Part shown: one piece after another, positions 1 to 20,875 of the stretch
Position numbering within the stretch: the stretch's first letter is position 1
Layout of the letters: each line of letters opens with the position of its first letter
Source: Epiperipatus broadwayi
Lineage: Eukaryota; Animalia; Onychophora
Direction of reading: 5' to 3'
DNA: 64,000 nucleotides
Assembly: GCA_028023455.1 (NCBI GenBank)
Contig: JAQFVV010000010.1
Location: forward strand, 12,710,001-12,774,000
Position numbers and translations under genes: made by a program
The notes under the pieces: generated by a model
Databases searched by the model: none
Told to the model about the DNA's origin: nothing
Seen by the model: only the letters and a program-made list of their open reading frames with translations

Positions 1-3000
1 TTTGGGAAAAGATAAGGGGGATTTATATATAAAAGCCATGGAGTTGACAAAGATTATGTTGTGGAAATGGGATGGAGCAGGATATGAGAAAACTTAGAGT
101 GGGGAATGGAAAGGGAAGATAAAATGGCTAACAGATTTCTCTGGGCATAATTGCTGAGAGATTCCTGACTCCATATAAGGGGAAGTCACAGTGTATCACA
201 TCACATGAACAAGATCGTTGTGAGAGTTAACCCGCTGTTATTGAGGAAATTCCTATCCCAGGCACAAATTACCTGAAGGTTAATGAGCTCTTATGATTAT
301 TTTGTATACGTCAGAAATTACTATGAGAGGGAAATATGACTTTATTGTGGACTGAGAAATTAGAACTGTCTCTAGTGAAATACAGTACATCTATATGTGT
401 AGACGTGCAGAGCACTTTTGAGATTGAAATTCTAAATGTTTTACTTAATGTGGATTGCATAATGGTGTTATTTATTTTGTCTGTTTATTCAATAAATTAG
501 TAAATTTTTATTATATTGAGTATTTGAATTAATTTAATTCCCAGTTACTGTATTTTACTGTGATTTGTTATGTTTTAGCAGGTACATAGCAAAAGTTGGC
601 ACAGTTAAAAAATCTGAACTAGCTGTAGGGAACGAAGTGATAAGTTAGGAAGGAATACAGATGTGTTTTGTTTCGCTGGATCAAAAATGTCTTTGGGGCA
701 ATCAAATATACCAGAGTTTGATATTGGTAAGGCAGTGGAACGGCCACTGTATATTATGCAAATTGAACATTTTTTTGTACTTAATGATATTAAAGAGAAT
801 TAATAAAAAAAATAGCAGCTCTTTTAAGTCTGATGAGACGTAAAGTTATTGATATTATAAATAAATATTTTGAGCATCCAATAAATGAGTCAATCATGTA
901 TGAAAACATGATAAAAAAATTGAATGATCTATTTAATCTGAAACCATCTCGTCACATAGCCAGACTAATGCTAAAAAATAGAAAGCAATATGAAAGAGAG
1001 ACTATAAAAGAGTATGATATAGCATTGAGAAAGTTGTCAAAAAACTAGTTATAGAGATTTTGTAGACCAAGTACTGTTAGGATCAATTACTATGGGGGAT
1101 TGCAAATGACGGGGTTTGGAAAAATTTATTTATTGAAGTAGATTTAATGTATGAAAGGCCATTAAGAAGGAAATAGCATATGAACTAATAGTTGAACAGG
1201 CTCTCTCACATTCAGAAATATTTAAGATTCAAAAATATGACTGTTAAACAGAGAGAACACAGGAGAACAAAAAATGGGGAGTTGACAACATTAAAAATAG
1301 AAAAGTAATTTGTTTTTGTGCAGAGTAAAAGGTCATGTTGCATGGTTTTGCCAATAGAAAAACCAGATGTGTTTCAAGTGTAAAGCCAGAGGGCATCTAG
1401 CGAAAGTGTGTAGAAAGGCTGAAACTGTACAGAAATAATATTGTGCTGAAAATAAAAAGCAGTAGAAAAATAAATTGAACGGCCTTCATACATTAAAAAT
1501 ATGAAAGCAATAGTAGAAAAGTTTATGACAAAACTTGAGACATGGGGTACAGAAGTAGAAATGGAGATAGGTAGTGGATCAGGAATCATTATAATATCTG
1601 AAGAACTGTGGAAAAAAATAACACAAAAAAAAATTACATTTATAAAGGCACAAGATGTAAGTTGGAATGAGATAGAGATTAAGGGAATAGAAGTACCAGT
1701 TAAATATAGAAATAAAGAGGTAGAACCTTCTTTATATATAATGAAATGAGATATTAGTCCTATTATAGGGCATGAATGGTTTGATTGAACAGGAAATGAA
1801 AGAATTTCCTAAATTATTTGAAAACTATTTAGGTTTGATCAATACAACCCAGTGGATGTGGAGTTAATGGAGAATGTGATTCTAATAATATGCAAACCTA
1901 GAAAGATACCATTTGCACAATGTGCCAAAATGAAAGAAAAACTTCCTGTTTAATTAAAAATGGAGTATTGACCCAGTATAATTCTCAGAATGGGCCATGT
2001 TTATAGTAGTTATAGCAAAACCTAACAATCAGACTTTGTGAGGATTATAGAATTACAGTGAATAGATTTTTTAATTAAGGGGCATACCTGAGGCCAAATG
2101 TGAGAGAAGTACTGGCATCATTAGCAAATGAAAAAGTTTTTGCGAAGCTGGATTTAAATTCAGCATACTACCAAATAGTAACAAAAAGAATGGCACAAAT
2201 GATAGTACGATGCCTTTTTCTGTTTAAATGTAATAGATTACTGTTCAGAGTAACTACTCACCCCAATATTTTCCAAGCAAAAATAAAAAATATTTAACAA
2301 GGTTTAGAGGGAGTAGTACCGTGTTATGATGACACTGATTTCTGCAGAGTCACTCGATTTATTAGGGAAAAGAGTAAGAAAAGTTTGTGAAAGGTTGAAT
2401 AGAGCAGGAGTTAGGCTAATTGCTGAAAAGTCAGTGTGGCAAACTGATGAATTGATTTTTCTCGGGCATATCATTTTGGAAAAAGCAAGCGGCCTTTTCC
2501 CAAGAAAATGAGAACTGTTAAAAATGCAGAGCTGAAAAATGTAAAGCAATTGCAGGCTTTTCTGGGCTTGATTAATTTTTTTGAGCCATTTCAATGATTG
2601 CACAACCTTTAAACGAATTATTAAAAAAGAACTAAAAATGGGAGTGGTCTGAGAAACAAGGTATAGCTTTTGAAAAGGGAAAGGTGCTCTTGGTGTCTGA
2701 TAATTTGTTAGTGCAGTTTAACGATAATCAGCCAGTTTAGATTACAACTGATGCTTCAGATTGGGGCGTTTGTACAGTTCTATTGCATATGATGGAAAAT
2801 GGGGAGCGGCCAATAGCATATATCTCATGCACATTGTTGAAAGCAGAAAAGAATTATAGTCAAATTGACAAAGAAGTGTTTGCTATAGTTTTTTCATTGA
2901 AAAAGTTCTACTAATACATTTTTGGAAGAGTGTTTAAAATAGTGACAGATCATAAGACTTTTGTAGGTATTTTTGCTCATAATCGGATACCTCCTGAACA

Positions 3001-3134
3001 TTTAAACCTGAGAATGTCTAATGTTTTTAGTTTGGTATGATTATGAATTAACATTTTAAAAAGGAAAAGAAATAACTCATCAGATATGTTATCCAGATTA
3101 CTAGATAAACATGAACCTGTAGCAAATGAAATAG

Positions 3135-3367
3135 ATCACATGATCACCATTTTTTGTGCTTGCTATTATTGAAACAGGCAAAACTTTTCATACAGCAGTG
3201 CCACTCAGTGCAAGCCAGAGTAATCAATGGATGCCAGAAGGCTTGTGCATAAAATCCCTATCTAATTCTTAGTCATCCAATATCTCCGCACTAGTTGTTT
3301 TTGGCATCCATTGATTACTCTGTCTTGCACTGAGTGGCACTACTGTATGGAGAGTTTTGCCTGTTTT
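3135..3367. mobile_element. Short inverted dimer of the CTAG-hammerhead (Penelope pLTR-like) repeat family
   Basis: Left arm is the reverse complement of, and right arm is direct to, the repeat at 13045-13230. The left arm breaks off at ACTAGTT, inside the hammerhead stem III. Confidence 0.8.
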
Positions 3368-3989
3368 AAATGAAAATATATGTAAATCACAATGATGTGG
3401 TGAAATCAAAAACAATAAACAGTTGGATAGTAAGTAGATGGACTAAAGAAGATAAAATTTTAGAAAAATGGATTAGGTCAGGTTGGCCAAACAAAAAACC
3501 TTTGTATCTTGCACAGGGGTTTGGATTAACAGAGATAAGCTAACAGTGTGTCATGATTGTATAGTTTTGGGGAATGAGTAGTGGTACCTATTGCTGGGAG
3601 GCAAATAGTTATAAACTTATTGCAAGAAAGTCATCCAGGCATACGAGCTGAAGTATTAGCATGTAGTCTGGGGGCCTGGAATTAATGCTGGCATTGAAAA
3701 GTTTGTAAAGAAATGTTTTTCATGTCAGGAGGAAATGCAGCTTCCAACAAAAATGTAATAGCATGGCCAGTATCAACCAGACCATGGAAGAGTGTGTACA
3801 TTGATCATACAGGACCAGTAAAGAGAAAATACTGTTAATAATGATCGGTGCTTTCTTAAAATAGATTTAATGCCATATAGTAAATAATACTAGTACAAAC
3901 AAAATTATTAAATATTATATATATATATGTGCTCTGTGCACAGTTAATGAAGCTATTAATAAATTGTCAAAATTTTTTTTTTTTTTTTT

Positions 3990-4038
3990 ACTGCCAAGTG
4001 CTTTCGGGACAGTCTACAGTCCCATATTCATGGCGAGT
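3990..4038 (-). ncRNA. Mirror copy of the A3-U8 hammerhead-like motif
   Basis: Reverse complement of 5809-5857 with the same core; the stem III loop is GCAC. Confidence 0.55.
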
Positions 4039-4083
4039 TATTCTGTTAATAACTGTAAAACTATGCAAATTTATATGCAGATG

Positions 4084-4971
4084 TTACATGGACCATTTAC
4101 AAGATGGGGAATAGCAGGCCTCTCTTCTGTTGATTGCCGATGGGTCAGCCGCAATGAAGTAAGCTTCTCTAACTTTACGTTTGGTGTCGTTTGTTTCAGA
4201 GCAAACAACACTGGCTGTGGTAGGTAGAAAAGCATGTCCAGAGTTTCTTTCATGTTCGACAAAAATCGAATTACCTTCAGATTTTGTTTTGGTTTTATTG
4301 TAAAGGTATCGGTGTTGAGCTACTCTGGTGGCAATGTTTGTTTTGGTCTCTCCGTAATATGTTGCCATGCAATTTCTTTGGGGGCAGGTAATTTTGTACA
4401 CAACTTGAGGAGTGAGTTCAGGTTTGATCCTGTCTTTGGTATTAATTATCAGTCTATTGGTATTGGGAGGTGAACAGAAGGCGACTTCAAAGTCACATGA
4501 TAGTTGATTGATAAGGCTTTTAGCTGTAGAGTGAACGTATGGGATTAAGATTCTTGGTTTGTTTTCTTTCTTGTGGTTGTGGTTTATTTTATAGAAAAAT
4601 TTGTTGATTTTTCTGTTGATGGATGAATAAGTGTGTCCAATTTTCCTTAAATCAGTTATATAATTGATGAGATTTTTTCTTTTATCTGCCTCATATTTGC
4701 ACAAGTTATGGTTTCTAAACAAGAATGAGGAGAGGGCTGCAAGTTTGTGTGAGTGAGGCGCATAAGAATTGGGATTTGTCAAGCCTCTTGCTTCCAAAGG
4801 TTTGATTACCATTTGGTAGTCCAGCTTCTCTATGTTTTTGATAACATATATGTCAAGGTATTTGACCTGTTTGTCTTGGTTTTCCCAAGTAATAGTAAAA
4901 GTGAGTTTGGTATTATTATGGAGGCTATTGTAAAGATTAGAGATGATGTCTTCTGGGGCAGCAACAAACAT
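4084..4971 (-). CDS. PLE polyprotein C-terminal fragment (RT thumb plus GIY-YIG endonuclease), 5'-truncated
   Basis: 295-aa ORF with FTITWE...YLDIYV...MVIKP (PLE RT thumb) and VVYKITC...YYGETK...R..QH...EH...GH...R..REA (GIY-YIG). Confidence 0.85.
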   Translation of the reverse strand: MFVAAPEDIISNLYNSLHNNTKLTFTITWENQDKQVKYLDIYVIKNIEKLDYQMVIKPLEARGLTNPNSYAPHSHKLAALSSFLFRNHNLCKYEADKRKNLINYITDLRKIGHTYSSINRKINKFFYKINHNHKKENKPRILIPYVHSTAKSLINQLSCDFEVAFCSPPNTNRLIINTKDRIKPELTPQVVYKITCPQRNCMATYYGETKTNIATRVAQHRYLYNKTKTKSEGNSIFVEHERNSGHAFLPTTASVVCSETNDTKRKVREAYFIAADPSAINRREACYSPSCKWSM

Positions 4972-5750
4972 GTCAAATACCTTGACATATATGTTAGCAA
5001 AAACAGAGAAGCTGGACTATCAAATGGTAGTCAAACCTTTGGAAGTAAGAGGCTTGACAAACCCCAATTCTTATGCACCTCACTCACACAAACTTGCAGC
5101 CCTCTCCTCATTCTTGTTTAGAAACCATAACTTGTGCAAATATGAGGCAGATAAAAGAAAAAATCTCATCAATTATATAACTGATTTAAGGAAAATTGGA
5201 CACACTTATTCATCCATCAACAGAAAAGTCAACAAATTTTTCTATAAAATAAACCACAGCCACAAGAAAGAAAACAAACCAAGAATCTTAATCCCATACG
5301 TTCACTCTACAGCTAAAAGCCTTATCAATCAACTATCATGTGACTTTGAAGTCGCCTTCCGTTCACCTCCCAACACCAATAGACTGATAAATAATACCAA
5401 AGACAGGATCAAACCTGAACTCACCCCTCAAGTTGTGTACAAAATTACCTGCCCCCAAAGAAATTGCATGGCAACATATTACGGAGAGACCAAAACTAAC
5501 ATTGCCACCAGAGTAGCTCAACACTGATACCTTTACAATAAAACCAAAACAAAGTCTGAAGGTAATTCGATTTTTGTCGAACATGAAAGAAACTCTGGAC
5601 ATGCTTTTCTACCTACCACAGCCAGTGTCGTTTGCTCTGAAACAAACGACACCAAACGTAAAGTTAGGGAAGCTTACTTCATTGCGGCTGACCCATCGGC
5701 AAACAACAGAAGAGAGGCCTGCTATTCCCTATCTCGTAAATGGTCCACGT
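4943..5750 (+). pseudogene. Second (plus-strand) PLE RT/GIY-YIG copy with a 2-nt deletion and a premature TGA
   Basis: Near-identical to the minus copy. It lacks TA near 4996-5005 and has CAC TGA where the other arm reads His-Arg (stop at 5525-5527). Confidence 0.85.
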
Positions 5751-5808
5751 AACATCTGCATATAAATTTGCATAAAATTTGCGTAGTTTTACAGTTATTA
5801 ACAGAATA

Positions 5809-5857
5809 ACTCGCCATGAATATGGGACTGTAGACTGTCCCGAAAGCGCTTGGCAGT
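5809..5857 (+). ncRNA. Atypical minimal type I hammerhead ribozyme (A3-U8 core) at the PLE 3' end
   Basis: ACT(C)GCC-ATGAATA-T-GGGAC(TGTAGACT)GTCCC-GAAA-GCGC-TT-GGCAGT gives stem I, stem II and a palindromic stem III around a variant core. Confidence 0.6.
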
Positions 5858-6738
5858 AAAAAAAAAAAAAAAAAAATTTTGACAATTTATTAATAGCTTC
5901 ATTAACTGTGCGCAGAGCACATATATATATTAATTTATTTAAGCGTTAATGAAGTAAAATCTTAACTAAATATTATAATATTTTTTTCCAATATACAGTT
6001 TTCCCGAAGTCATTGTGTCCGACAATAGAGCAAGTTTCAGGGGACACAGAATGCAACAGTATTTTGAAAGTAGGAGTATTAACCATATTCTGACACCACC
6101 ATAGCCTCTGAGTCGAATGGACAGGCAGAAAAAACAATACAACAAATGAAGAAAAGTTTATTGAAGATGAAGATATCAGATATGCAAGAAGCATTACAAG
6201 AAATAATGCTGTGTCAACATTCGACACCATCCACAGCCAGAGGAAAATCATCGGCAGATTTGTTTTTAGGAAAGAAGCTAAAGATTAATCTGTCATTACT
6301 TCAACCAGTAAAAAAAGATTCATTAGGCAACATAAAACTTCATACAAACTTTAGTGTTGGAGACAGAGTATGGGTATGTGATATATTGCATAAGAAATAG
6401 ATGAAAGGAGTGATTGATAAAATAATAGCGAATAAAATTTGTGTGATTCTAGGATCAGAATAATTTTAAATATTTGGACACATAAATAATTTGAGAAGAT
6501 GTGAAGAGGACATCACACAGATTTTATGGCCATTAGAATCGAAAATAAAAGTGAATGTCAAACCAAATGTGATGAAATGTGTAGAAATCGGAAATGAAGA
6601 AGGAAACGAACAAAACTCAGAATGAAATGGTGGAAAATACAGGAAATAAATTAAATTGGCCAATATGGGAAAAACATAAGCTGAAAAAATTAGAAGATTA
6701 TAAAACATGTAAAGGGCGTTCTGGAATCGGGGGAGGAG

Positions 6739-7615
6739 TGTTATATAAGAAGAGAAGTTAGAGGGTAGTTGAAATTGAAAAAGAATTGTACAATATAAAT
6801 TGTAATCACCGGAAATCTAAAAGTTGGAAATTATAAAAGCACATTGTTTTCAAAGTAAAGTACTCCAGTAGAAAAGATAAATAATTAATTATAGAAAAAC
6901 ATTGTTTAAATAAAAACAAAAGGATAATCATTTGTTTAATAAGAAATAACTAATTACAGAATTTTGAAATGCCAAAGTCCTGCTCCTTTAATTAATGAAA
7001 TAATAATGGTAAGAAAAAGTGAAAATCAAAAAACAGGAAAGATTATGTTGTGATTAAATTAAAATATACTAATTAAATCTGTTAAGGCAAGATTTAATTA
7101 GTGTGAAGATAAGAAAATATGTAGTGATATAAATAGGGAGAAATTTTAGCTACAACTGTTCTGCATTTTCATTGTCTTTCATGGAAAACGTCTCTGTCGT
7201 CGAGCATTTAGCTGAACAAGATCGCCGTGAATGTTAACCCATTGTCATTGAGGAGTATCCTATCCCAGGCACAGTTAGGATTGCATAGAGATTGCCCTGA
7301 TCTTATTATTTTTTATACGCCTGAGAAGGCTTGCAGAAGAATTACTACCAGAAAGTAATATGACTTTATTTTGTCAGTTAGATTTTTAATCAATATTGTG
7401 GACTGAGAAATTAGAACTATCTTTAGTGAAATACATCTATATGTGTAGATGTGCAGAACAATATTGAATTGGAATTCTAAATGTTTCAGTTAATGTGGAC
7501 TGCATAGTGGTGTTATATATTTTCTGTTTATTCAGTAAATAAGTAAATTTTCATTATTTTGGATATTTGAATTTATTTAATTCCCAGTTATCGTATTTTG
7601 CTGTGATCTATTACA
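6739..7615 (+). repeat. 3' LTR of the decayed Gypsy element; related sequence at about 205-575
   Basis: Starts TG directly after the PPT and ends TTACA. About 7214-7610 aligns by eye with about 205-570 (GAACAAGATCG...CCTATCCCAGGCACA...GTGGACTGAGAAATTAGAACT...CTGTGAT) with many differences. Confidence 0.7.
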
Positions 7616-7979
7616 TTTTTTTGTTAGCAGTTCACTTTAAATGTCTATATTTCATTTCAGTGTATAGGGTGTGTTTATATACAGGTATATGTTATATGAA
7701 TTTTATAATTTATATTCTCATTAGCCATAGTCCATTCTTAAAAATATTCTAATAACTAATAATTTTATAGCAATAATAGTTCTCTTCTTTTATTCTGCCA
7801 TGTACTGACTGGTTTAATGTGTTTATTTAATAAAGATATATATGTGTACATGCATGGTTGGTTAATACAGGCAGTGTTATGTCATTCTAAAAATAGTAGT
7901 ATTCAGAAAAGTAGAGTTAAGCAAACTTCGAGTAACCTACATATTCTAATTTGTATAACAAATTGTCTAATTATTTTAT

Positions 7980-9330
7980 TTTGATATTGTCTAGATCTTT
8001 GCATAGCCAAAACTCAATAAACTATCCACAATCTGTTGTCAATGCACTCTTACTAAGATCTTTAAATATATAAAGAGTGAAACACACAAATGAAATATCT
8101 TTGAGATTTTTATCTGCCTAAAAGTTTAAGTTAATTCCATTCAACAGGCAAAGATAAATTGTTAAAAGCAGATTAGTAAATAATTTTCACAATAAACTTC
8201 TATTCAATACTTTATAATAAATCATAATTATGTCAAAGGCTAACTGGTTTCCAAATATAATTCACATGGTCAAAGCTTAATAAATCAATAGAATATCCAC
8301 AATTGGGGGGACATCTGTAGAAAAAGGCATACCACTTTTTACTTTGGTGTAAGATCTTTAAATAGACAAAGGATGAAATGTGACTGAAACACATGGGGAA
8401 TTTTTATCTGATTAAAAGTCTAAAATAAATCCCATTCAACAGACAAAGATAATAAACTGGTTGAAATAGATTAATAATTAATCCTTTTTACAACTTTTCA
8501 AACAAATTTCTATACAGATAAAAATCTCAATCCATTTCAGTCATGAATGGAATACATCTCTTATTTATAGAAGTTGCCTTGACAACAAATTGTGAATATT
8601 CTATTGATTTATGAAGTTTTGACTGTTTTGCTGTGAATTACATTTAGTAACCACTATCTACTTAACTATTATTAAGTTATGATTTACTATATCTAAAGTA
8701 ATATTTGAATACAAGTGTAATGTATATACTGAAATTTGAATGTAATTAGAGGGGATTTGAAGACAGACTTTTAAGTTCCCTTCAGTTAGGACAATAATAT
8801 TGGCATCAACAAAAGCTTTGCGTATTCCATCATCAGGAATTGGAGGATGGAGATTAAAATCTGCCCATTAAAGTTTGAAGATTTTCTATCTTAATATGAA
8901 CTGAGTACTGATTATATATGGGTGTGGGAGATGATGATCTGGACCAACTGATGAGTGCTGGTTCAGCAAGTAATACATATGAGACCATCTTTTTTCCATG
9001 TGTGTGGTCATGTCTATCAGTTATATAGGTTGGAGTACATAGCTGAAGTTATGTTGAAATCCCCTCTAATTATATCAAATAGGAGTTTATTTGAGAAGTT
9101 GTAAAAATGATTATTTATTAATCTAACTTCAAGCAGTTCATTTCTGCCTGTAAATGAGGTTTATTTAAAACTTTTAGATATAAAAATCTTAATCTTTTTC
9201 AGTCATGTATTTCATTCTTTGTCTATTTTAAGATGTTAGATTAGGACTTTATTTTTTTATTTACAGAGATTTACTTTGATAACAGATTGTGGATATTCTA
9301 TTGGTATATTAAGCTTGACTATAGAAGATA
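7980..9330. repeat. Degenerate direct and inverted repeats (unit about 290 bp), probably an old PLE-type relic
   Basis: 8050-8330 resembles 8340-8600, and 9075-9320 is a diverged reverse complement of 8270-8510. A dead hammerhead lies between them at 8943-8980. Confidence 0.45.
8943..8980 (+). ncRNA. Degenerate hammerhead of the TACGTA family (probably inactive)
   Basis: ACCAA-CTGATGA-GTGCTG(GTT)CAGCA is present, but GAAA is changed to GTAA and the 3' strand of stem I is lost. Confidence 0.55.
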
Positions 9331-11424
9331 TGGTTTAATTTCCATTTATATATGTACTCAATGAAACATTGATACATCCATTTTTTTGTCAAATTGCCCA
9401 CATAAAATGATCATTAATGAATTTATTCATTTCACCAATTACATATAGTTTGAAATATTGTATTTATTAATTATTATTATTATATATGCTCGAGTAATTT
9501 GGCCTAAAGTTAGATTTTATAAATCCTTGAAAGACCATTTTCTCTATTTCTAACCACTATTTTAAATTGAGTTATATTCTTTTCACAATTTATTTGACTT
9601 TTTCATCTGCTGTCTTGTTTTTTCATGCATTTTTTTTCTAATATTTCTTTCAATACTCAATCCATTGTAAAGTTGTCTAACAATATGAATAGTTAATGAT
9701 ATTTAGAAGATCATCACAAAAAATATTAATGATATATAAAGAAATCTGATCCATGATTCATTTTTTGGATTCAGTAATATTTTTTCAGAATAAAAAGATA
9801 TTCTGGAGAAATTCTAATAATCTTTTTCTTGGATAAACTATATCTTTCTGATAAAGTCTTTTGTTTTTTAGTTTATTAACAATATAGAAATTTTGGTTAT
9901 ATTGTAATAATTATCAAAAAGATAAAATAATTACAAACATTTTTAGACAATATTATTTTACAATTCAGGAATTTAATTAATCCTAAATTATAATTCAAAT
10001 TGAGTTCCAAGAGATTTTCCATGAATTAGAGACTATTTTTAGAAATCAATAAAATTTAAACTTTTGATACCATTTGTATTTTTATCAACAGATAATGGTG
10101 AAATGTAGTATACCTTAATATGAAAGTCAAAAAATAGGTTATAAAAAGAGATTTTGACTCCCTTTTAGCAATTTTTGAAACTAACTACTCAATTTTTCAT
10201 TGTTTTGAAATATAAAAGATAAAAAGTGAGAGAAATATGAATCCAAACATTACATTTAATTCTTGACCTGATTTTCCTTAGGATTGATAAATTTGTCTTG
10301 TTACATTACCACTGCCCCACAATCAATAAAATATCCTTAAGATAATTTATGAACAGCTTGATACAATAAATTTTTTTTTTTTACATTAATAAGATTTTTT
10401 AATGAATATTCTTTTCAGGAAATCTTTGTTCATAGAAATTTACAACACACATTGTCTTTATTAATTCATTTCTTCAGTATAGTCTCATTTTAACTACCCA
10501 AATCAGCCCATGAACATACTTTGTACATTTATTCCCTATTCTATTTTTTTTTAATTTTATTTCCTGAATTTGTATTATGCTACATTTAGTCTTTTTTTCT
10601 TTAATATGTATCAAGTTGGAGAAAAATTATATTGAAATTTTAAATTGTGGGCAAACAGGTATTTGAAATTATTGTAATAATGTTCTTATTGAAATTTGGA
10701 TGTAAATAATAAGTTTTTTTTGTCACTTTTGCTCTATCTGCATAGAACATTTAAAATTTGTGAAATAGCTAAATTTTAGAAACTTATTCTGCTTCAGAAT
10801 CAGTGGAGGGATTTAGTTGTTTCTCACTGGTTCAGCAGAACCGATACCGAATTTATTGTTGAGTTTAGTGAACTGTTTGTTAAACCTAATGGCTATTAGT
10901 CTATTTGGCCAACCTCTATAGGAATAGGATTCTATTCCTACAGTGAAAAGATGATTAATGATAAATCACTAGGCCAATGAAGCTCAGGTAAAAGTGAAGA
11001 AAATTGCAAATGAGGATTCCAATAAAGAAGCAGTATGGAAATATCTTAAATAACAGTTTTATTGTTTTCTGTTAACTATTATTTAATATGTTTTCATTAA
11101 TATTTTAAAACTCTTATTTATAACATAATCAAGTTTTGTGGACCTTTTTTATTATTCTTATTTTAAGTATTAACTGCATGAAATAATAAACTATCTTTCG
11201 ATATATATATATATGTACTTAAAATGGTCATTGGGTCATCAACAAACTGGTTGTTAAATTATTTGAATCCTATCATTGATCAGAATAAATATTTGTTCTA
11301 ATCTTATGTAGATTTATGCTTTTTCAATTACAATAAAGCTATTTATTTTAAATTGTTTTGTAATAAATTATTCACAAATTTTGATTTTACTAATAGATTT
11401 TATATATAAGTATTTGTGTTTTAG

Positions 11425-11573
11425 ACAAGTACGTACATATCAACTCAATCGTCCAGTAGGAAAGATTTGGCAATATGTTGTCAAAAAGTATTTTGCTTAT
11501 GTTGGATGGTATGAAAAGTATCTTGAAACTAAATTTCCAAAAGCCTATAAAGTCTATCAAATTTTTATAATAG
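11425..11573 (+). CDS. LETMD1: LETM1 domain-containing protein 1-like, internal exon A (QVRTYQ...YVGWYEKYLETKFPKAYKVYQIFIIG)
   Basis: TTAG acceptor and GTGAGT donor; ends in phase 1. The Y-E-K-Y-L-E-x-x-F-P-x-A-x-x-V-Y motif is recalled from the LETMD1 N-terminal region. Confidence 0.8.
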
Positions 11574-11954
11574 GTGAGTTGTGTTTATTTTATTTTTTAA
11601 ATAGTAAATGAGCAGTTAAATTTTTTTATCTAATTAATCATAGAATTTTTTTTTAATGTAGATGTTCGCTAATGAAAGTTTTCAGTTTTTATTTCAGATT
11701 TAACAAGTTAAATTAAGGTGGGAATGGAGTCTTATTAATTAGAATAAAAATGATAAAATAATTAAAAATAATACTTTGATGTTTTTGTTAATTCTTAAGA
11801 TTAATTTTATTGTAAAAATTTTTTTTTGATTGCTTTTGGTGACTTAAAACTAACTTTGTTTTTACTTCTGAAACAAAAAGATAAAAAGAATGAACATGTC
11901 TTATGTTGTGTAAAATTAAAATGATCAATACATTATTATAATTGATTAATTATT

Positions 11955-12063
11955 ATTATTATTTTTTTATGTGTCAAAGCATCTGGCCGGGAAGCGAACC
12001 CACAAATCCGGGACAACTGCTTGTAAGGCAGTTGTGCTGATCATTCGGCTACCAACGCTTGAC
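11955..12063 (-). mobile_element. tRNA-derived short retroposon (SINE-like) with a TAC anticodon loop
   Basis: Minus strand 11979-12058 has an A-box (TAGCCGAATGA), the hairpin ACAACTGC-CTTACAA-GCAGTTGT, a B-box-like GGTTCGCTTCCC and an A/TAA-rich tail. 15-bp TSD AATTGATTAATTATT at 11940-11954 and 12064-12078. Confidence 0.75.
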
Positions 12064-12397
12064 AATTGATTAATTATTGATTCTAAAAAATAACAAATAA
12101 AAAAAATATATTTTAATATTTATTGCTAAAAACCTGAAACAAATTTTTTTTTTATTAATTTCAATAATAAAATTTGTATATTTTTCCCCCTCTATTTTTT
12201 ACCATGCATGTATCTAAAGCTGGGTCAAATTTCAGACATTCGTTTATTATTGGGATTAGCAATCATCTCCAATCGTATGTGCAACATCAAAAGATCGATC
12301 TTATTTTAATTTGTCATCTTTTTATGCTTGCTGATCTCAAGTCTGAAGATGTTTCATCACCAAGATTTTCAGAATGCAATCCTTGTATTGATGGACA

Positions 12398-12832
12398 TTA
12401 AACCACTAAACATCACATGATTACCATTTCTTATGCTTGCTCATAGCTGTTATTAAAACAGGCAGAACTCTCCATACAGTAGGGCTACTCAGTCCAAGCC
12501 AGAGTAATCAATGGATGCCAGAAGGCTTGTGCATAAAATCCCTATCTAGTGCCTATTCATCCAATATTCCCAGACTAGTTTCTGGCTTGTGGCTTTTGTC
12601 AGTGAGATCTAGGTGCAGTGAGATCGAAGGCTCCTCACTGATGAAGGCCCCAAGCCAGAAAGAAGTCTGGGGAAGTAGATCCCAGATAGGGATTTTATGC
12701 ACAAGCCTTCTGGCATCCATTGACTACTCTGGCTTGCACTGAGTGACATTGCTGTGTGGAGAGTTTTGCCTGTTTTAATAACAGTTATGAGCAAGCATAA
12801 GAATTGATGATCGTGTGATGTTTAATGGTTTA
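12398..12832. mobile_element. Inverted dimer of the CTAG-hammerhead pLTR-like repeat
   Basis: Arms of about 200 bp in opposite orientation. Each carries a hammerhead motif, at 12568-12606 (minus) and 12633-12672 (plus). Confidence 0.85.
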
Positions 12833-13078
12833 ATACCAACCTGCCTAATAGGATAGTGGTGGCTATGGTTATTAAAGAATCAAAGACGCCAAAATGTATG
12901 GGTATTGAATTGAGTTCAGATCTATATGAGTATATAAGCTAATGAGCTTGGATTGAAAATATTATTGTGTTTTCAATTTTGTTCTCATAGTTTTGTAGTT
13001 AAGTAGAGTTAAAAGGTGGCTGCTGGAGGGTTGCATTACATCTTAAGATCTAGATGCAGTTCTCTCAGATCCAAGGCT

Positions 13079-13118
13079 CCTCACTGACGAAGGCCACAAG
13101 CCAGAAACTAGTCTGGGG
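13079..13118 (+). ncRNA. Minimal type I hammerhead ribozyme (CTAG family) within the repeat at 13045-13230
   Basis: CCTCA-CTGACGA-A-GGC(CACAA)GCC-A-GAAA-CTAG-TC-TGGGG. Canonical core, GUC cleavage triplet (after 13113) and palindromic stem III. Confidence 0.8.
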
Positions 13119-16100
13119 ATATTGGATGAATAGGCACTAGATAGGAATTTTATGCACAAGCCTTCTGGCATCCATTGATTACTCTGGCTTGCACTGAGTG
13201 GCACTACTATATGGAGAGTTTTGCCTGTTTTTATTGATGGATATGTGTAGTATTCAAAATCTCACAACTATGATCATTTCCACATTTTGCAATTTTTTCT
13301 GAAAAGTTATTAGTTTCATTTAAATTGTTTATTTGCACAGATTGCATTTTTTTGCCATTATATCATATATTTATTACATTTTGATATTGTATATACATAT
13401 ATGAGTATTATCTTTTAATTTTTCAATTATCTAAACTGACTATAATAAATTTATTATTTTTTATAATTGCAAAATATTAATAATTTTAAATGCAACATTA
13501 TTCTAAAATAGTTTTTCTGTTTTAATGAATCAAACATAGTTTGAGTTATAAATGGTTTTCCACCATAAAAACATTTTTTGTGTGTTTAAATTACTTTCTG
13601 CTCAAAATTTGATGTATAAGAAACAGATGTAAAAGACATTGTCTGTAGATTATATCACATTTCAAATATTGATAAATGTTTCTAATATAGAAAATATAAA
13701 TTCTTCCATCTTTTTTTAATACACCAGCTTCAAATTTTTTAACTCTTTTGAAAAAAATATAAGTACTTATATTAAGCAAATTTAACAGTTATTCATTTTA
13801 AAAAACTATTGTTAGATGTCATTAAAGATATATAAAATATTTCCATAAAAATGGTAGATTTTTAATAATTCTGTATTTTGATATATTTTTTAAAAAACCA
13901 CTTTCAGATGTCATTAAAGATACTGTAACTATATGAATGGGATAAGGGTATGTATAATGCCCAAAGAACAGAGACTATTAAATACAAAATTGAATCCAGG
14001 TTTAATATCAAGTTAAAACGAATCTAATGAAAGATCTTGCTAATCTGGTTCTTTAAGTCCTTAATCTATACCCCTACCAGTTTAAGTTTGATATGATATG
14101 GTAAAATGCTAGCTCTGATACGTATATGACAAAATTTTATAAGATAATATTCTAGTCTTTATTTGAGCTGAAACATATGCATAAAGGTAATGCTGTCTGA
14201 ATTATACACCTGTGTATAATTGTTCATTTATATCACTTGACTAGCTAGAAATAAGATTTATAACTTTATTTTAATAATGGTAATAATAATTTATTTACAT
14301 TAAATAAATAATTCAAAATTGCACTGGATGAAACGTAAAGGGATAAACCTAACCTATGACACTTATGATGGATAAAACTAAATATGATGTTGAACTAAAG
14401 ACATAGGTTAAGAATCGGAGGAAAATCTGCCCCCTTTTTTTTTTATTAAGTTTAACAAACTTATAAAAATTTTAAGTTTATTCAGTTTTGAAATGTTAGA
14501 TAATATAAAACTTAAATAAATTACCTTAAATATAAAATTATTATTTAATAATAATTTTGATTAATTATCATGATTTTCCTTTGACTATATGTATATCTAA
14601 AACATTTACTCATAACTAAATATATTTATACTAAACATTATGTAAATAAGTAATAGAACTTGAAATAAAGTCAAAATTGATAAAATAATGAAACACACAA
14701 TGACCATATGTCCATGAGCATTTTAAAGTTCAGTGCATAATGAGTTATTCTAGATTCGTGAAAAATTAAAATCCAGATACTGTTCAGAATTCCTATTTAA
14801 TATCTCACTACATGTTTTTATTATCAGTGTTTACTGTTTAATCCCATTCAGCTAGTTTCCATATTTTAGTATTCTATGACTTGAGTTTCTTAATCATAGA
14901 TACATGCTTAAAATGTCAAGGTCTACTAAATGTTTCTTCTGAGTTAATTATCCAATTTTATTGTACACATTATTCCTAGAGTAGTAGTGATAATATATTT
15001 CAGTATAGCACAACCAAGTCCTTGTGTATTGTGGTTTGCATAAATATCACACAAATTTATTGAAAGATTTTGGCAACGTGAGGAAAATAATTCTATTATA
15101 TGCATATCCTCTGTTTCTAATGATAAACATTTGAGAAATTAAAATTTGATCTTTCTGTGATGCAAAATATATTCAATTTTTTTTATTGCTATTGTGATTT
15201 CTTTTTATGATGATTCTGTCATTATTATTGAAACAGTAAGGTCTGCTTTGCAGATCTTCGTTTCACCTATTCTCACCTATTTCCTACCCTCATACCTTAG
15301 TTTGAACCCCAATATATCATAGTGTGTCTGCAATACACTTATATACCGAAAATCCCGCCTAATTTTAAACCACGAGTACAATGCTCGTATTATATATAAG
15401 TATAATTCATTCCCAAATAAATAAAATATTATGGATTATATGTTCACATAATTTAGATTTATTTAAAAAGTAGGTTATATAAGTTGTAATTGCGCACACA
15501 CTATGATTGTTAATTAAAGTTAAAGTTATTTTGTTTGAATCTATTTACAAAAATATATTACAGTCGTAATATATTTTTGAGTTAAAATAAAGTTCATATT
15601 CATTTAGTAGATAGATTCAAATATTGCAATTGAAAAAGTAAAATCTTTTTCTTTTAATTTAATAAAAGTCATTCCAAATATTTCTGTTAAAATAAATGAG
15701 GGACAATAGTTTAATTATTTAATTATTAGCTAAGAAAACAGCAGATGTCCACTTAAGGTTTTCTTTTAATTAATAAAAGTTATTTTAATTAAATCTAGTT
15801 TGTAATTCGAATGTCGACAAGGAAATTAACAATAGAAATTAATTAAAATTTTGTTGAATTCCTTTAGACATTCGGATAGATTTAATTACAGCTGATAAGT
15901 CCGATATATTTTGTAACGCTCCAGGGCAGTTCTATTGTTTCAATTCCACTATAAAAAGGACGGTTTTCTTTTGTTCTCCATTCTGGTCATTTGCTGATGA
16001 AATATTTCCAACCAAAATTATTCTGGTCATTTGTTGATGAAATGTTCTAGTAAAATATTCTTTTAAATATTTTCCTGAGATTTTAGCTAAGTACCTGTGA

Positions 16101-16710
16101 ACTTATATTTGAAGCCGAGTTTTCGTCTCCAAATTAATTCACCATGTTTACCACACAAATTGCTAACCTTGACATGTCGGAGTAGAGCTGGCGTGGAGTA
16201 TATTTCCCTTTAGGAATGGCCAGCTGCTGCTCTAAACCATCAAAATCTATCACATGAGGAACGCTGAAATTGCTGCTGCTGCCAAAAATATGAACAATTC
16301 CAGATTTTGTTGCTGGATTGTATAAAACCTGCCGACCATCAATCTACCTGCAAATGCTTCTCCAGAGGTAACCCCAAATTAACCCAAGAGTTTTTGTGAT
16401 TCCTGTCATGTTATGGCTAGTTCTATAATTACGGATTGACGCCTAGTGGTGACAACTGAGATTTGTGAGCACGTGACATCGCTCTGTTGTCAGAGAACGC
16501 GAGTCGTTAATAAAGTTTGTTAGTGAAGTTAACTGTGTGTAATTATTTAGTTAGATATTACGGCCAAGAACATAACATGGTGTCGGAGTGAATCAATGAA
16601 ATATTAATAAAAAAAAATATTTCTAAAGTATAAAACAGTGAGTATTTAAAGATTGATAGAAATAGTTTCATAGCAATTTTTTTTTCATATCATATTTGTC
16701 GATATACAAA

Positions 16711-18894
16711 ATGGCGTCACAATTCGATCGTTTTTATAATATCGAACCGCTATCTATGGAAGGAAATATGTCAATCAAATGGACTGATTGGAAAGAATTA
16801 TTCCTAAATTTCCTAGAAGCTACAGAAAATGATATGAAATCAGATAAAGTAAAATTAGGAATATTACGTCATCTCATTGGAAAAGAAGGGAGAGATGTAA
16901 TAAAAACATTAGATCACGCGAATCCAGAAGATAAAACAAAATTTTTATCCGTCTTAAACCAAATGGATAAGTATTTTAACACCATGAAAACTTTATATGA
17001 CAGAATAAAAGCATATACAATGGAGCCACATGAGGGAGAATTGATTGATCATTTTCTTACTCGCTTAAAAGTAGTAGTTGAAAAAGCTGACTTCGGGGAT
17101 CAAAAACAAAATATCCTCCGCGATAGAATTATAATGGTACAAAAAGAAGAAGGACTAAAAGACAGATTATTTGAAAAAGGAAATATTACATTAGAAAAAG
17201 CACTGGAAATAATACGTGGACATGAAACTAGAAGACTCAAAAATGAATTACTGGGAAAGTCTGAACTATGTATTAACGTAATAGCGAAAAATACAACAAA
17301 CATACGCAATTGTCAAAAGTGCAACCGTAATCATCCAAAACGTGAGTGTCCCGCATTTGGTAAAAAATGCTATAATTGTGGAAAGTTAAATCACTTTGCC
17401 AATAATTGCCGTACGAGAAGCTACGACCATAAAATTTTAACACAAAAGCGCTCAAACACAAGATATAAAAATATTAATAGAAATGGACGTTATGTGAACG
17501 AAGTACATGATGCTACGACATCGGATTCTTCTTATACCAGTGATGTTGAAAACACAATTGCATACGTCAGACGTGTAGACTCAACTCATTCATGTAATGG
17601 CTGGTATGAACAGATTTTATTAGACAACAATAAAGTAAAAATAAAAATAGACACAGGAGCTGATGTAAACATTATGTCTAAAAAAGTGCTTAACACTATT
17701 CATCCACAACCAATAATATACAAAACAAAGAAGAAATTACGCGCTTTTGGAGGATCATTTCTTACCCCAATAGGAAAAGCAAAACTACAATGCAAAATAA
17801 ACAAAGACCAGCGTAATTTACGTTTTATAATAATAAAAGAAGACGAACCAACACTTCTTAGTGGCCGTGATTGTGAGTTATTAGGTTTAATTAAACGCAA
17901 CAAAATTACAGTTCAAAAAGTAACTATGAAAAATAAAAGTAAAAATGATCAAAATATATCTAACAATAAAGATAAAATAACAAAGAGTAGAAAAGATAAT
18001 AAAAGTATTAAAACACAGGAAGTAAAAGAAAATGAAAACTTTAAGCCTATATATGAGACAAACAAAGATGTTTTTCAAGGTGTGGGTTGTTATGAAGGAG
18101 TAGATCCAACATTAATTCCACTAAGTATACATGAAAAATTACACGAGGAATTAAAAAAATTGGAAGATATTCGTTTACAACATGAAATATTAAAGAAATT
18201 GGGTGAAGAACAATCCCATCAATTAATTGAAAAGGAGAGAGAAATACAGCGAAAATTTCAATTAGCAAAGGAAGAGGAATGGCATAAAATCACTAATATA
18301 GAAGCTGAAATGTTAGAATTACAAAATAAAATTCAAGAGTTAGAAAGATACAAAATTGATGAAAGTAATCAAAAGCAAGTTGATGTTAAAAAAACTGAAG
18401 ATAATGCCAGGCTAGCAATTCACAATAAAGAATTACTTGATAAGGAATGTAATGTGCTAAGAATCAAAGTTCACAAACATCAATCTAGTGTAGAAGAATT
18501 AGAGGAAGAAAAAAGTTTGAATTCTGAATTATATCACCAGATTCAACAGCTTAAAGACAATCTTCACAGTTTAACAGTTGTTCATCAGGATTTGCGATTA
18601 CAAAACAGCAAATTAAAATCTTCTATTGATTTATTAACAAATGAACTGAAAGTTGTCAAAGCTGATTTTATCAAAATGAACACAGCTGAAAGATTCACAA
18701 CAACTCCACAGTCACTAGAACCGGATGAGGAGACACAGTTGCCTGTACCTGAGAGAGAGAAAGCACCACTATCAACATCAGGTGATAATGGCACAGCAAT
18801 AAGGAGAATACCAGTTGAACGTTCCGGGAAGAGAGAAAAATCAAACCAAAGAAGAAGACCTTCAGTACATTTAAAAGACTATGTTTGTAAATAA
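16711..18894 (+). CDS. 727-aa fusion: Gag (zinc knuckles), aspartic protease, first residues of RT, coiled coil, integrase-type C-terminal tail
   Basis: Open ORF from ATG 16711. Contains CQKCNRNH..C and CYNCGKLNHFANNC knuckles, the KIDTGADV protease motif, the IPLSIHEKLHEELKKLE RT-entry motif and the terminal RRRPSVHLKDYV motif. There is no YxDD, RNase H or DDE core. Confidence 0.9.
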   Translation: MASQFDRFYNIEPLSMEGNMSIKWTDWKELFLNFLEATENDMKSDKVKLGILRHLIGKEGRDVIKTLDHANPEDKTKFLSVLNQMDKYFNTMKTLYDRIKAYTMEPHEGELIDHFLTRLKVVVEKADFGDQKQNILRDRIIMVQKEEGLKDRLFEKGNITLEKALEIIRGHETRRLKNELLGKSELCINVIAKNTTNIRNCQKCNRNHPKRECPAFGKKCYNCGKLNHFANNCRTRSYDHKILTQKRSNTRYKNINRNGRYVNEVHDATTSDSSYTSDVENTIAYVRRVDSTHSCNGWYEQILLDNNKVKIKIDTGADVNIMSKKVLNTIHPQPIIYKTKKKLRAFGGSFLTPIGKAKLQCKINKDQRNLRFIIIKEDEPTLLSGRDCELLGLIKRNKITVQKVTMKNKSKNDQNISNNKDKITKSRKDNKSIKTQEVKENENFKPIYETNKDVFQGVGCYEGVDPTLIPLSIHEKLHEELKKLEDIRLQHEILKKLGEEQSHQLIEKEREIQRKFQLAKEEEWHKITNIEAEMLELQNKIQELERYKIDESNQKQVDVKKTEDNARLAIHNKELLDKECNVLRIKVHKHQSSVEELEEEKSLNSELYHQIQQLKDNLHSLTVVHQDLRLQNSKLKSSIDLLTNELKVVKADFIKMNTAERFTTTPQSLEPDEETQLPVPEREKAPLSTSGDNGTAIRRIPVERSGKREKSNQRRRPSVHLKDYVCK
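18160..18690 (+). other. CEP83: Captured host-gene segment resembling centrosomal protein CEP83 (CCDC41) coiled coil
   Basis: EILKKLGEEQSHQLIEKEREIQRKFQLAKEEEWHKITNIEAEMLELQNKIQELERYK aligns without gaps to the human CEP83 stretch as recalled ([57 protein letters not shown]). Similarity continues through EK..NS.L..QI..L...SL...DL...N..LK. This alignment is from memory, not from a database search. Confidence 0.75.
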
Positions 18895-20875
18895 AATTAA
18901 AAAAAAAAAAAGAGAGTTGCCATGTTATGGCTTGTTCTATAATTACGGATTGACGCCTAGCGGTGACAACTGAGATTTGCGAGAGCGCGACATCGCTCTG
19001 TTGTCAGAGAACGCGAGTCGTTAATAAAGTTTGTTAGTGAAGTTAACTGTGTGTAATTATTTAGTTAGATATTACGGCCAAGAACATAACAATTCCTAAC
19101 TAACATGCTATAGTCATTTTAAATTGTTTTCTTTTATTTCACATAACTTTATTATGTACTTCTTTAACGTGTTCAAATATAATCAACAGTTTTGCTCTCT
19201 ATCTTTGGGTTAATATTTACTATTTATAAAGCTTTCTTTTATTTTATTATGATAATGTGTCAGAATCGTCTTTGACTGAGTGAATTATTCCCTTTGTTGA
19301 AAGTAAGACACCGCTATTAAGGCATATTTTAAATTTATAATAATTCCCAATTTTATTATCTTGCAAATCACTCGTTCGAGGGCGATTCTAATCATCTTTA
19401 ATATATATAATAATCAAATAGTTTAAAATCTACATTTTATTGATTCTAACCTAATATGAGAGTATGTGCGAGGTCAATGATTAAATGTGTCCCCAAATGC
19501 ATGATTGCGTAAATAAACCTATGCTTTCTTTTCAAACCCGCAAGCATGCATTTTCCTATGTTAAATACTGCGTTCTACTTTAATTAAAAAGTTTTATCAT
19601 TGACGTCGAGAATGTGCGGACCCTTTTAAATGAATTTCTGGGAATTTGATTGGGCATTTCTCTTAATCCAAGTAAAACCCATTTAGTATGTTTTATATAC
19701 ATTAGTCTAGTATTGCTGGTAAATGAATTGGTTGTTGAGACCGCTTTGTTTTGCTTTTCCAATGATTTTTACATGGCCAAGTCCGTTCTCTCTTCGCTTC
19801 CTGCGGTTTCCAGGCAGAGTGTGTCCACAAATGTCACACCTGGGAATTAAACGCAGTCGTCACCCAGTCGCTAAGTTTCGGCTGTTCATGACACTTTCCT
19901 ACGGGTTAGCGGCGAGCTGCCCTCCGTAATCATTCCAAATATTTCGTTATTGTTTTATTTATATATTTATTTTTACAAAGCATCCGTGACTTAAACATGT
20001 CACACCCTCCAACTCTAATAAATTCATTATTAGCAATACTGACCTCCCATCTGCTTTAGTTATTATTATCAAATAAATGCTTTGATCACATCCCCACTTT
20101 ATTGTTTAGTAAGCTTTTGTCCGTGCCATTCTCGAGATCAATAAATATTATATAACCCGTAAATATCAAATATTTTATTAAACTGTCATAATTACTCAAA
20201 GCACCTCGCACATGTTCCCATCTCTTTAAGCACATTATCGTAATGCTATTATCCCGAGGGATAGAATATATAATTTTGCTTTAAAACCTTTTTGTCATTA
20301 TTGGAATGTAATGCCAACAATTATTTAATACGCGTCCCTGTCTCATATAAGCAGACAGTGGCGTTATATATATATTTCTATATAAATAAATTTTGAAATC
20401 ATTTAAAACTAATTTTGATCTTTTATTTTATTGATTCCTATCACTGTCTCGGTCTATATATATATTTACTACATTTCTTTTGTACATCCATAGACGTTAA
20501 TTAGCAACTCCAAACTTATCTTAGTATAGAGTCTTTTGTTTCTCCCTGACCACCAGGCACCGGTAAAAGGTTATACTAGTAGTAGCATCAGATGCGTTAT
20601 CACGTAGGTGGCGCTGTGAAATTTGGACTTTAGATTCGAACTTCGTATATCTAGAAGGCAACCCCTCCTAGAATGTTCAGTTTCATGTGTGGGGTTTGAA
20701 TTCTGCAGTGTGTTAGCGAGATAGATGATTCTGACGGTTACATTATATATGTGGGATTTTGTAATCTATTTCAATAAATGCATATGCCTACATATATATG
20801 CATTTTCGAAATTTTAATTGCATGTATTTACAATTATCATTAGAGGTAAATGAATTTTTTATGGTATTGTCTTAA

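Follow-up and report, generated by a model that had tools for sequence, protein, structure and literature searches.

The element at positions 16399-19096 of the window (the whole 64-kb stretch of DNA analysed here) is a non-autonomous derivative of a Ty3/Gypsy-type LTR retroelement, without RT, RNase H and integrase domains of its own, in which the core of pol has been replaced in frame by an intron-less fragment of CEP83 (CCDC41), a centriole distal-appendage protein. The fragment is a piece of CEP83 and not a CEP83 gene. We consider it likely that the copy was made by LTR-mediated retroposition, by template switching in a particle. The features of the element are as follows.

16399..16403, + strand: left copy of the TSD, ATTCC; the identical 5-mer abuts the outer edge of both LTRs
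16404..16577, + strand: 5' LTR, 174 bp, TG..CA ends, with TATAAT at 16424-16429 and AATAAA at 16509-16514
16578..16594, + strand: putative PBS, proposed from its sequence, starting with TGG and directly adjoining the 5' LTR
16711..18894, + strand: single ORF of 727 aa plus stop, comprising Gag, protease, RT stub, CEP83 fragment and tail
16711..17580, + strand: Gag, about aa 1-290, with two zinc knuckles (17311-17349 and 17368-17409; Pfam zf-CCHC, E 3.2e-5)
17620..17874, + strand: retropepsin-type aspartic protease, aa 304-388, DTGA at 17650-17661, colinear with that of the relative P0055
18040..18168, + strand: stub, aa 444-486, consisting of the region before RT and the RT start; the P0055 alignment stops at aa 481
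18154..18711, + strand: CEP83-derived intron-less fragment, aa 482-667, equivalent to positions 344-529 of a 721-position CEP83 profile
18712..18765, + strand: linker, aa 668-685, predicted to be disordered (pLDDT < 50)
18766..18891, + strand: putative remnant of an integrase C-terminus, aa 686-727, adjoining the PPT, with the stop 4 nt before the purine tract
18899..18916, + strand: polypurine tract (PPT), a run of 18 purines separated by 1 nt from the 3' LTR
18918..19091, + strand: 3' LTR, 174 bp, TG..CA ends, direct repeat of the 5' LTR
19092..19096, + strand: right copy of the TSD, ATTCC, the same 5-mer as the left copy

We recovered the hallmarks of a Ty3/Gypsy-type element, namely paired LTRs with TG..CA ends, a 5-bp TSD, a PBS, a PPT, a CCHC Gag and a retropepsin. 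The two LTRs were 96% identical (about 4% apart), with 7 mismatches over 174 positions and no indels. The preliminary description of this DNA had reported the 174-bp LTRs with their 7 differences, the PBS, the PPT and the ATTCC TSD, and all of them were found again at the same places. Three of the seven LTR differences were of the CpG/TpG type, the 5' LTR having TG where the 3' LTR has CG; CpG-to-TpG decay is thus seen in the 5' LTR. A tRNA scan detected no tRNA genes, as possible PBS primers, in the 64-kb window, and the Rfam scan of the window was empty. The DNA is AT-rich (29% GC) and the remaining ORFs of the window are transposon fragments. From this GC content and from the ranking of the CEP83 similarities, the host may be an AT-rich invertebrate and perhaps a spiralian, which is no more than a guess.

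The single ORF starts with the ATG at 16711, stops at 18892-18894 and contains no stop codon and no frameshift. From aa 3 to aa 481, it was colinear with the Gag-protease-RT start of the autonomous Ty3/Gypsy relative P0055 (39% identity between the two Gag), confirming the earlier reading of one open 727-aa frame in which Gag and protease run into the first RT residues. The Pfam matches of the protease (PF13975, PF00077, and PF13650) were all under the gathering score. Past the end of this colinearity, P0055 continues with RT-RNase H, then integrase in a neighbouring ORF, and the relatives P0069, P0070, and P0074 carry RVT_1, RT_RNaseH, Integrase_H2C2, and rve (in the order PR-RT-RNase H-integrase). 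A Pfam scan detected neither RT nor RNase H nor integrase in the 727-aa ORF. There was no env ORF or domain in the element, and no record matched the exact 727-aa ORF. The pol region is reduced to the stub and the tail, corresponding to one large deletion of the replacement type and one small in-frame deletion. Its replicative genes being lost, copying of the element would depend on the proteins of another element.

The last ~40 residues weakly resemble an integrase C-terminus at the sequence level. The local scores obtained with the integrase C-termini of P0087 and P0074 were reached by 4/500 and 16/500 shuffles, respectively, and the tail had no match in a word-indexed protein database search. 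The preliminary description had proposed an in-frame coil followed by an integrase-type tail: the coil stood (it is CEP83-specific, at ~18154-18711), while the tail is better regarded as a putative remnant. The linker between them may be either a decayed continuation of CEP83, whose match envelope extends to ~aa 683, or element sequence.

CEP83 identity of the inserted coil

Residues 482-667 are, from their alignments, specifically CEP83 and colinear with it, and not a generic coiled coil. A phmmer search with aa 476-665 against 1.84e9 representative proteins gave 22 matches (best E 3.8e-20). Seventeen of these were either named CEP83 or unnamed full-length proteins of 600-745 aa that were matched at the same middle position, and every match that was named or had an inspectable gene corresponded to CEP83, with gap-free alignments to one and the same middle stretch. 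One of the 22 was a generic repeat protein. A profile built from 15 CEP83 proteins matched the ORF over aa 482-667 without gaps (128 bits, E 1.8e-41). The fragment is thus homologous to the middle of the ~720-aa CEP83, of which it represents about one quarter, and both the N-terminal and the C-terminal part are absent. In the predicted structure, aa 471-663 formed one continuous helix (pLDDT > 90).

The fragment shared 39% identity with the annelid and 37% with the nemertean CEP83, these two orthologues being 43% identical to each other, and 32% with turtle CEP83 over 174 aligned columns. It was identical at 27 of 59 residues to the first matching exon of a CEP83 gene on an ENA contig, the nearest counterpart to the 26 of 59 that the preliminary description gave for human CEP83; there was no human protein among the matches of any search. 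The top CEP83 identities were 41-46%, indicating that no sequenced species is the donor.

Two other identities of the coil were considered and rejected. A generic coiled coil was rejected: PDB and Pfam returned only noise and a word-indexed protein search gave no match, but the matches of the all-protein search were both CEP83- and position-specific. A domain native to retroelements was rejected because the ten matches that were scanned (among them five of the nine that were shorter or atypical) had no Gag, PR or RT domains, and because P0055, the closest autonomous relative, has RT at the place of the coil. Neither of the two outcomes that the preliminary description had set against its reading, matches to generic coils only and a coil already carried by autonomous relatives, was therefore observed. 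The exchange of the pol core for an in-frame CEP83 fragment, proposed there, is confirmed by these CEP83-specific matches, by the finding of no database protein that has both RT and this region, and by the missing introns described below.

Processed origin and junctions of the fragment

We compared the fragment with six CEP83 genes, those of Owenia, Tubulanus, Branchiostoma, Priapulus, and Potamilus and the one on an ENA contig, which represent at least five phyla. Introns were present in six of six genes at the equivalents of ORF residues 486 (phase 1)/487, 534/535, and 584/585, and all three were absent from the element. The lack of these three conserved introns, as read from the orthologues of other animals, indicates that the fragment came from a spliced mRNA. 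The suggestion of an intron-less capture was thus borne out, with orthologue genes as the reference.

In the case of LTR-mediated retroposition, an autonomous parent would have supplied the particle in which reverse transcription occurred, and the polymerase would have left the element RNA near the integrase C-terminus. A spliced CEP83 mRNA packaged in the same particle, presumably transcribed from the host's own gene, would then have served as the template for ~560 nt, spanning two complete exons and a portion of another in the middle of the rod. The polymerase would finally have switched back to the RNA of the element where RT begins, via a short stretch matching both templates. The chimeric cDNA would have retained both LTRs, the PBS, and the PPT, and an integrase acting in trans would have inserted it, making the 5-bp duplication. 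The product would be one in-frame Gag-protease-CEP83(coil)-tail protein, without RT, RNase H, and integrase core. The donor, the exact nucleotides of the junctions and the microsimilarity are placed here by comparison with relatives. At the 5' junction, the KKLED codons agree both with RT and with the way in which the preceding CEP83 exon ends, according to the patterns of these relatives, and up to ~9 nt (the LED codons) would be compatible with both RT and CEP83, as judged from relatives. The parent element and the host CEP83 gene were not found in the window, in metagenome contigs (searched with protein and with LTR DNA) or in viral contigs.

The 5' junction could also have been set by splicing. 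The parent element would have resided in the CEP83 intron that precedes the first of the captured exons, its read-through RNA would have been spliced from a donor at the RT start to the exon acceptor, and a single template switch would have restored the 3' end. The first CEP83 residue that can be assigned without ambiguity, aa 487 (18169), indeed corresponds to a conserved phase-1 exon start in all six genes, and this exon is preceded by a 7.6-kb intron in one of them. However, KKLED fits the preceding CEP83 exon as well as RT, so that the junction may fall inside that exon. Moreover, a random junction would lie within a few codons of an exon boundary in ~13% of cases (an estimate from exon sizes), and an extra, earlier insertion would be required. 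We thus regard splice-mediated capture as unlikely.

LTR-mediated retroposition also has to be weighed against an assembly chimera, or against a processed CEP83 pseudogene inserted later, at the DNA level, into an element that had already undergone the deletion. One ORF reads through both junctions in frame, the LTRs are matched and the TSD is a perfect duplication. No poly(A) follows the fragment, no duplication flanks the CEP83 piece, and CEP83 does not continue in another frame past the fragment. The host sequence replaces the element ORFs and does not interrupt them, the RT core, RNase H and integrase core being absent where CEP83 sits. The composition is also even across the junctions, with a codon GC3 of 0.22-0.25 in Gag, PR, and CEP83. 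A chimera or an inserted pseudogene is, in our opinion, extremely improbable.

Spread, selection and possible function of the fusion

The fusion could in principle be a propagating and selected non-autonomous family, or a domesticated gene, whose Gag-PR-CEP83 protein would co-assemble with the host CEP83 rod or bring particles to the mother centriole. The 727-aa ORF is uninterrupted and both junctions keep the reading frame, the catalytic DTG, both zinc knuckles and the conserved CEP83 core motifs have been retained, and CEP83 itself forms an extended helical scaffold in the distal appendage (PMC11984956). Against this, neutral decay would leave the ORF open with P ~0.1-0.4, which is not significant, and two in-frame junctions have a prior of ~1/9. 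Neither another copy nor a relative of the fusion was found in 15 billion proteins, in metagenome contigs, in viral contigs or in the 64-kb window, and the 5' LTR exhibits the CpG-to-TpG decay described above. Such a family or gene is thus very unlikely. The hint of selection that had been drawn from the open ORF did not hold given these values of P and the 3 CpG/TpG changes among the 7 LTR differences. The idea that the fragment is moving as a helper-dependent element was likewise left unsupported, a one-off chimeric integration explaining the single copy equally well.

The fusion protein is most likely a by-product without a selected role. A centriolar or dominant-negative function received no support, and the release of the coil by the protease, an interference with centriolar CEP83 and a help in particle assembly, all suggested in the preliminary description, are speculative. 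The more specific proposal that the ORF is expressed and maintained because the acquired segment of the CEP83 rod co-assembles with the host distal-appendage scaffold also seems to us very unlikely. If true, the mother centriole or the basal body would receive Gag particles, or ciliogenesis would be perturbed, and the element would be a retroelement with a borrowed centriole-targeting module.

Comparison with known systems

The element is a clear new example of an already known process, the capture of host genes by LTR retroelements, LTR-mediated retroposition having been described before in animals. Taken alone, it points neither to a new mechanism nor to a function of the fusion. It is an unusually clean animal case, with complete ends, both junctions in frame, an identified donor gene and a processed origin, three deeply conserved introns having been lost. 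The element exemplifies exon shuffling by retroelements and the formation of Gag-host fusion proteins beyond the paradigm of retroviral oncogenes. The position of one junction at an exon boundary also bears on whether splicing or microsimilarity sets the junctions.

The closest parallel is provided by the LTR-mediated retrocopies of metazoans (Tan et al., 2016, Genome Res; PMC5131818), among which partial retrocopies replace internal parts of the ORFs of LTR elements while both LTRs are kept. As in these retrocopies, a partial mRNA copy stands in place of internal ORFs between both LTRs, without introns, poly(A) or L1 hallmarks. The sense orientation and the in-frame product, such products being frequent among them, are likewise shared, and the short similarity at their junctions may have a counterpart at the 5' junction of the element. 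Their junction microsimilarity has a median of 6 bp, their length has a median of 26% of the parental transcript, and in one Gypsy family the polymerase was reported to switch back close to an exon-exon junction (PMC5131818); the CEP83 fragment represents about a quarter of the parental CDS. Unlike in the cases of Tan et al. (2016), the microsimilarity is here deduced from relatives only, the entire fusion is one intact 727-aa Gag-PR-host ORF, the insertion is older (LTRs 4% apart) and the host is AT-rich and probably a non-model animal. Sources for the capture model that are cited in PMC5131818 include Goodrich and Duesberg (1990) and Hajjar and Linial (1993).

The element also resembles acutely transforming retroviruses in that Gag is fused in frame to spliced exons of the host and in the loss of replicative genes. 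In the classical model of gag-onc capture, splicing determines the 5' junction and non-homologous template switching the 3' one, and the two junctions of the element may have been set in the same way. Unlike gag-onc retroviruses, it has no env and no sign of infectivity or of a cellular phenotype, its host-derived part is a structural coiled coil and not a signalling domain, and the protease was kept. In maize Bs1 and other non-autonomous LTR elements of plants, pieces of host genes lie in the internal region, joined to gag-like sequence. The transduction of gene fragments by plant LTR elements is among the subjects reviewed in PMC13317346. The present element is similar to Bs1 in being a non-autonomous LTR element with a host gene fragment fused to gag-like sequence, but it differs from it by its animal host, its single gene fragment and its affinity to Ty3/Gypsy instead of Copia-like elements.

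Anatomy and surroundings of the element

The LTR retroelement at 16404-19091 (2,688 bp) is a real feature, and its anatomy as given in the preliminary description (LTRs, flanking pentamer, primer-binding site, purine tract and open ORF) was borne out. The pentamer ATTCC lies at both outer edges, TGG immediately follows the 5' LTR, and a purine tract of 18 nt stops a single base short of the 3' LTR. TATAAT and AATAAA are spaced by about 85 nt within the LTR. The 727-aa ORF runs from an ATG at 16711 to a stop at 18892-18894, with no internal stops or frameshifts. No other sequence resembling this element was found in the 64-kb window, which yielded no tRNA or Rfam matches and looks transposon-rich and gene-poor throughout (GC 22-37%).

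Features of the window
3919-5930: inverted duplication, nearly perfect, each arm about 920 bp, 97-99% complementary, the main arms 161 nt apart
4084-4971, minus strand, and 4943-5527, plus strand: repeated ORF of these arms, 295 aa and 194 aa, respectively
16404-16577 and 18918-19091: LTRs of the element, 174 bp each, 7 differences, no indels, TG at the start and CA at the end
38650-38964: RT_RNaseH fragment, transposon debris
39780-40097: Tc5/pogo-type HTH, transposon debris
47505-47906: ORF without Pfam match, listed with the transposon debris
52664-54426, minus strand: LINE-like (non-LTR) retrotransposon fragments with an Exo_endo_phos endonuclease ORF and an RVT_1 ORF, broken up into several ORFs
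56945-57757, minus strand: separate Gag ORF, 270 aa, Retrotrans_gag and zf-CCHC, no DNA-level relation to the element studied
63468-63827: integrase-core fragment, transposon debris

The inverted duplication, whose ORF had no Pfam match, probably represents two copies of a transposable element arranged head to head. GC skew was strongly positive (0.2-0.32) at 1-4000 and 36001-38000, and no tandem repeats were detected in 1-8000.

In the 727-aa ORF, Pfam recovered a CCHC zinc knuckle and, with models scoring under their gathering thresholds, a retropepsin, and no RT, RNase H or integrase domain; two zinc knuckles and a DTGA catalytic motif are present. A word-indexed protein search with residues 1-475 retrieved 34 relatives, many with RVT_1, RT_RNaseH and rve in the Ty3/Gypsy order. 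The closest, P0055, is an 874-aa Gag-PR-RT-RNase H protein (39% identity), adjoined on its contig by a 518-aa integrase ORF. It is colinear with residues 3-481, beyond which P0055 continues as RT whereas the window ORF does not, in agreement with the earlier account of a Gag-protease ORF devoid of RT, RNase H and integrase. Compared with P0055, the ORF shows one large deletion of replacement type and a single small in-frame deletion, and neither stops nor frameshifts. What survives of pol is limited to a short stub at the N-terminal end and possibly a remnant at the C-terminal end.

Identity of the coiled coil

Residues 476-665 gave only noise in the PDB sequence search, Pfam and NCBIfam, and the coil had no match in the word-indexed protein search. 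When 1.84 billion representatives were searched exhaustively with phmmer, 22 matches came back (best E 3.8e-20), mostly proteins of 600-745 aa, with matched residues at about 340-530 in the ~700-aa ones. All matches with a source name other than "hypothetical" were centrosomal protein of 83 kDa (CEP83, a centriole distal-appendage protein), from Tubulanus, Branchiostoma, Priapulus, Diadema, Patella, Acropora, lampreys, turtles and characiform fish; the unnamed full-length matches (Owenia, unionid mussels, Strigamia) aligned at the same position as named CEP83. One of the 22 (P0015) is a generic repeat protein. A retroelement-native domain was rejected as the source of the coil, as no retroelement domain was found in the ten matches scanned, among them five from the set of nine that are shorter or atypical.

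A profile built from 15 full-length CEP83 sequences matched residues 482-667 (128 bits, E 1.8e-41), ungapped against profile positions 344-529 of 721, and the most conserved family motifs are retained. The preliminary description was thus correct in its central identification. The fragment is 39% identical to annelid and 37% to nemertean CEP83, and the annelid, nemertean and mussel proteins share 43-45% identity with one another, so it looks like a piece of an ordinary CEP83 orthologue whose lineage has not been sampled. Similarity to CEP83 did not carry on in another reading frame. AlphaFold2 with the CEP83 alignment predicted a single unbroken helix at residues 471-663 (pLDDT mostly >90), followed by a disordered tail. 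Codon GC3 is equal across Gag, protease and the CEP83 piece (0.22-0.25).

An unannotated eukaryotic CEP83 gene was observed at 162-14905 of a 358-kb metagenome-assembly contig (ENA ERZ22147071, ctg29801l); no known sequence matches the fragment more closely than the two middle exons of this gene (46% identity).

Introns and junctions

We mapped exons in six CEP83 genes, five annotated (Owenia, Tubulanus, Branchiostoma, Priapulus, Potamilus) and the unannotated one on the ENA contig. All six have introns at ORF-equivalent positions 486/487 (phase 1), 534/535 and 584/585, with further lineage-specific introns at 638/639, 645/646 or 661/662. All of these are missing from the element, as expected from the intron-less segment previously proposed, and the captured piece thus corresponds to two whole exons and the greater part of a third, linked the way they are in mRNA. 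A poly(A) stretch was not found 3' of it.

At the 5' junction, residue 487 is the first that only CEP83 can explain, and it coincides exactly with a conserved exon start. The five preceding residues, KKLED, are compatible both with the RT-start pattern of the relatives and with the upstream CEP83 exon end, placing the 5' switch point within those few codons, with possible microsimilarity of up to ~9 nt judged from patterns in relatives. Alternatively, splicing could have made this junction, starting from an element that lay within the CEP83 intron upstream, the classical route of oncogene capture; we consider this unlikely and favour a template switch here.

On the 3' side, CEP83 profile homology wanes between residues 667 and 683. 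As to the integrase-type tail suggested earlier, residues 686-722 aligned weakly with the C-terminal ends of two related integrases (scores reached by 4/500 and 16/500 shuffles), and the tail had no match in the database search. Pol ORFs often stop close to the purine tract, and the stop lies 4 nt upstream of it, which favours an element origin for the very end of the ORF.

Evolution of the element and comparison with known captures

At three of the seven sites where the LTRs differ, the 3' copy has CG and the 5' copy TG; two neighbouring differences may stem from one event. CpG observed/expected is ~0.8 in the ORF and >1 in the LTRs. The three TG-for-CG sites (16404-16577 versus 18918-19091) suggest that CpG decay has affected only the promoter-side LTR. 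The hint of selection drawn from the open ORF was not supported, given the chance of escaping a stop (P ~0.11-0.44 at 1-2% neutral change per site) and a prior of ~1/9 for two in-frame junctions. No second copy, parent element or close host CEP83 was found in the window, 15 billion proteins, JGI metagenome contigs or IMG/VR. The source genome being seemingly absent from these collections, the lack of further copies reflects missing data and is no evidence that only one exists, and the proposal of a helper-dependent element on the move finds no support. CEP83 forms an extended helical scaffold through the distal appendage (PMC11984956), and the 185 residues taken up by the element would make up roughly one quarter of this rod. 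A function of the captured coil is not supported.

LTR-mediated retroposition has been reported in Drosophila, mosquito, fish, chicken and mammals; the retrocopies are partial, take the place of some of the internal ORF sequence of LTR elements and keep both LTRs, with a median junction microsimilarity of 6 bp (PMC5131818). In one Gypsy family the switch-back invariably lies close to an exon-exon junction, and some loci have been recopied as non-autonomous elements (PMC5131818). The structure of our element agrees with this process, and we thus read it as the product of two template switches: spliced CEP83 mRNA would have been co-packaged with element RNA, switching between the two would have produced the chimera, and enzymes supplied in trans would have integrated it. 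The element is an LTR-mediated gene-fragment capture of a kind already known, and thus a further example rather than a new mechanism.
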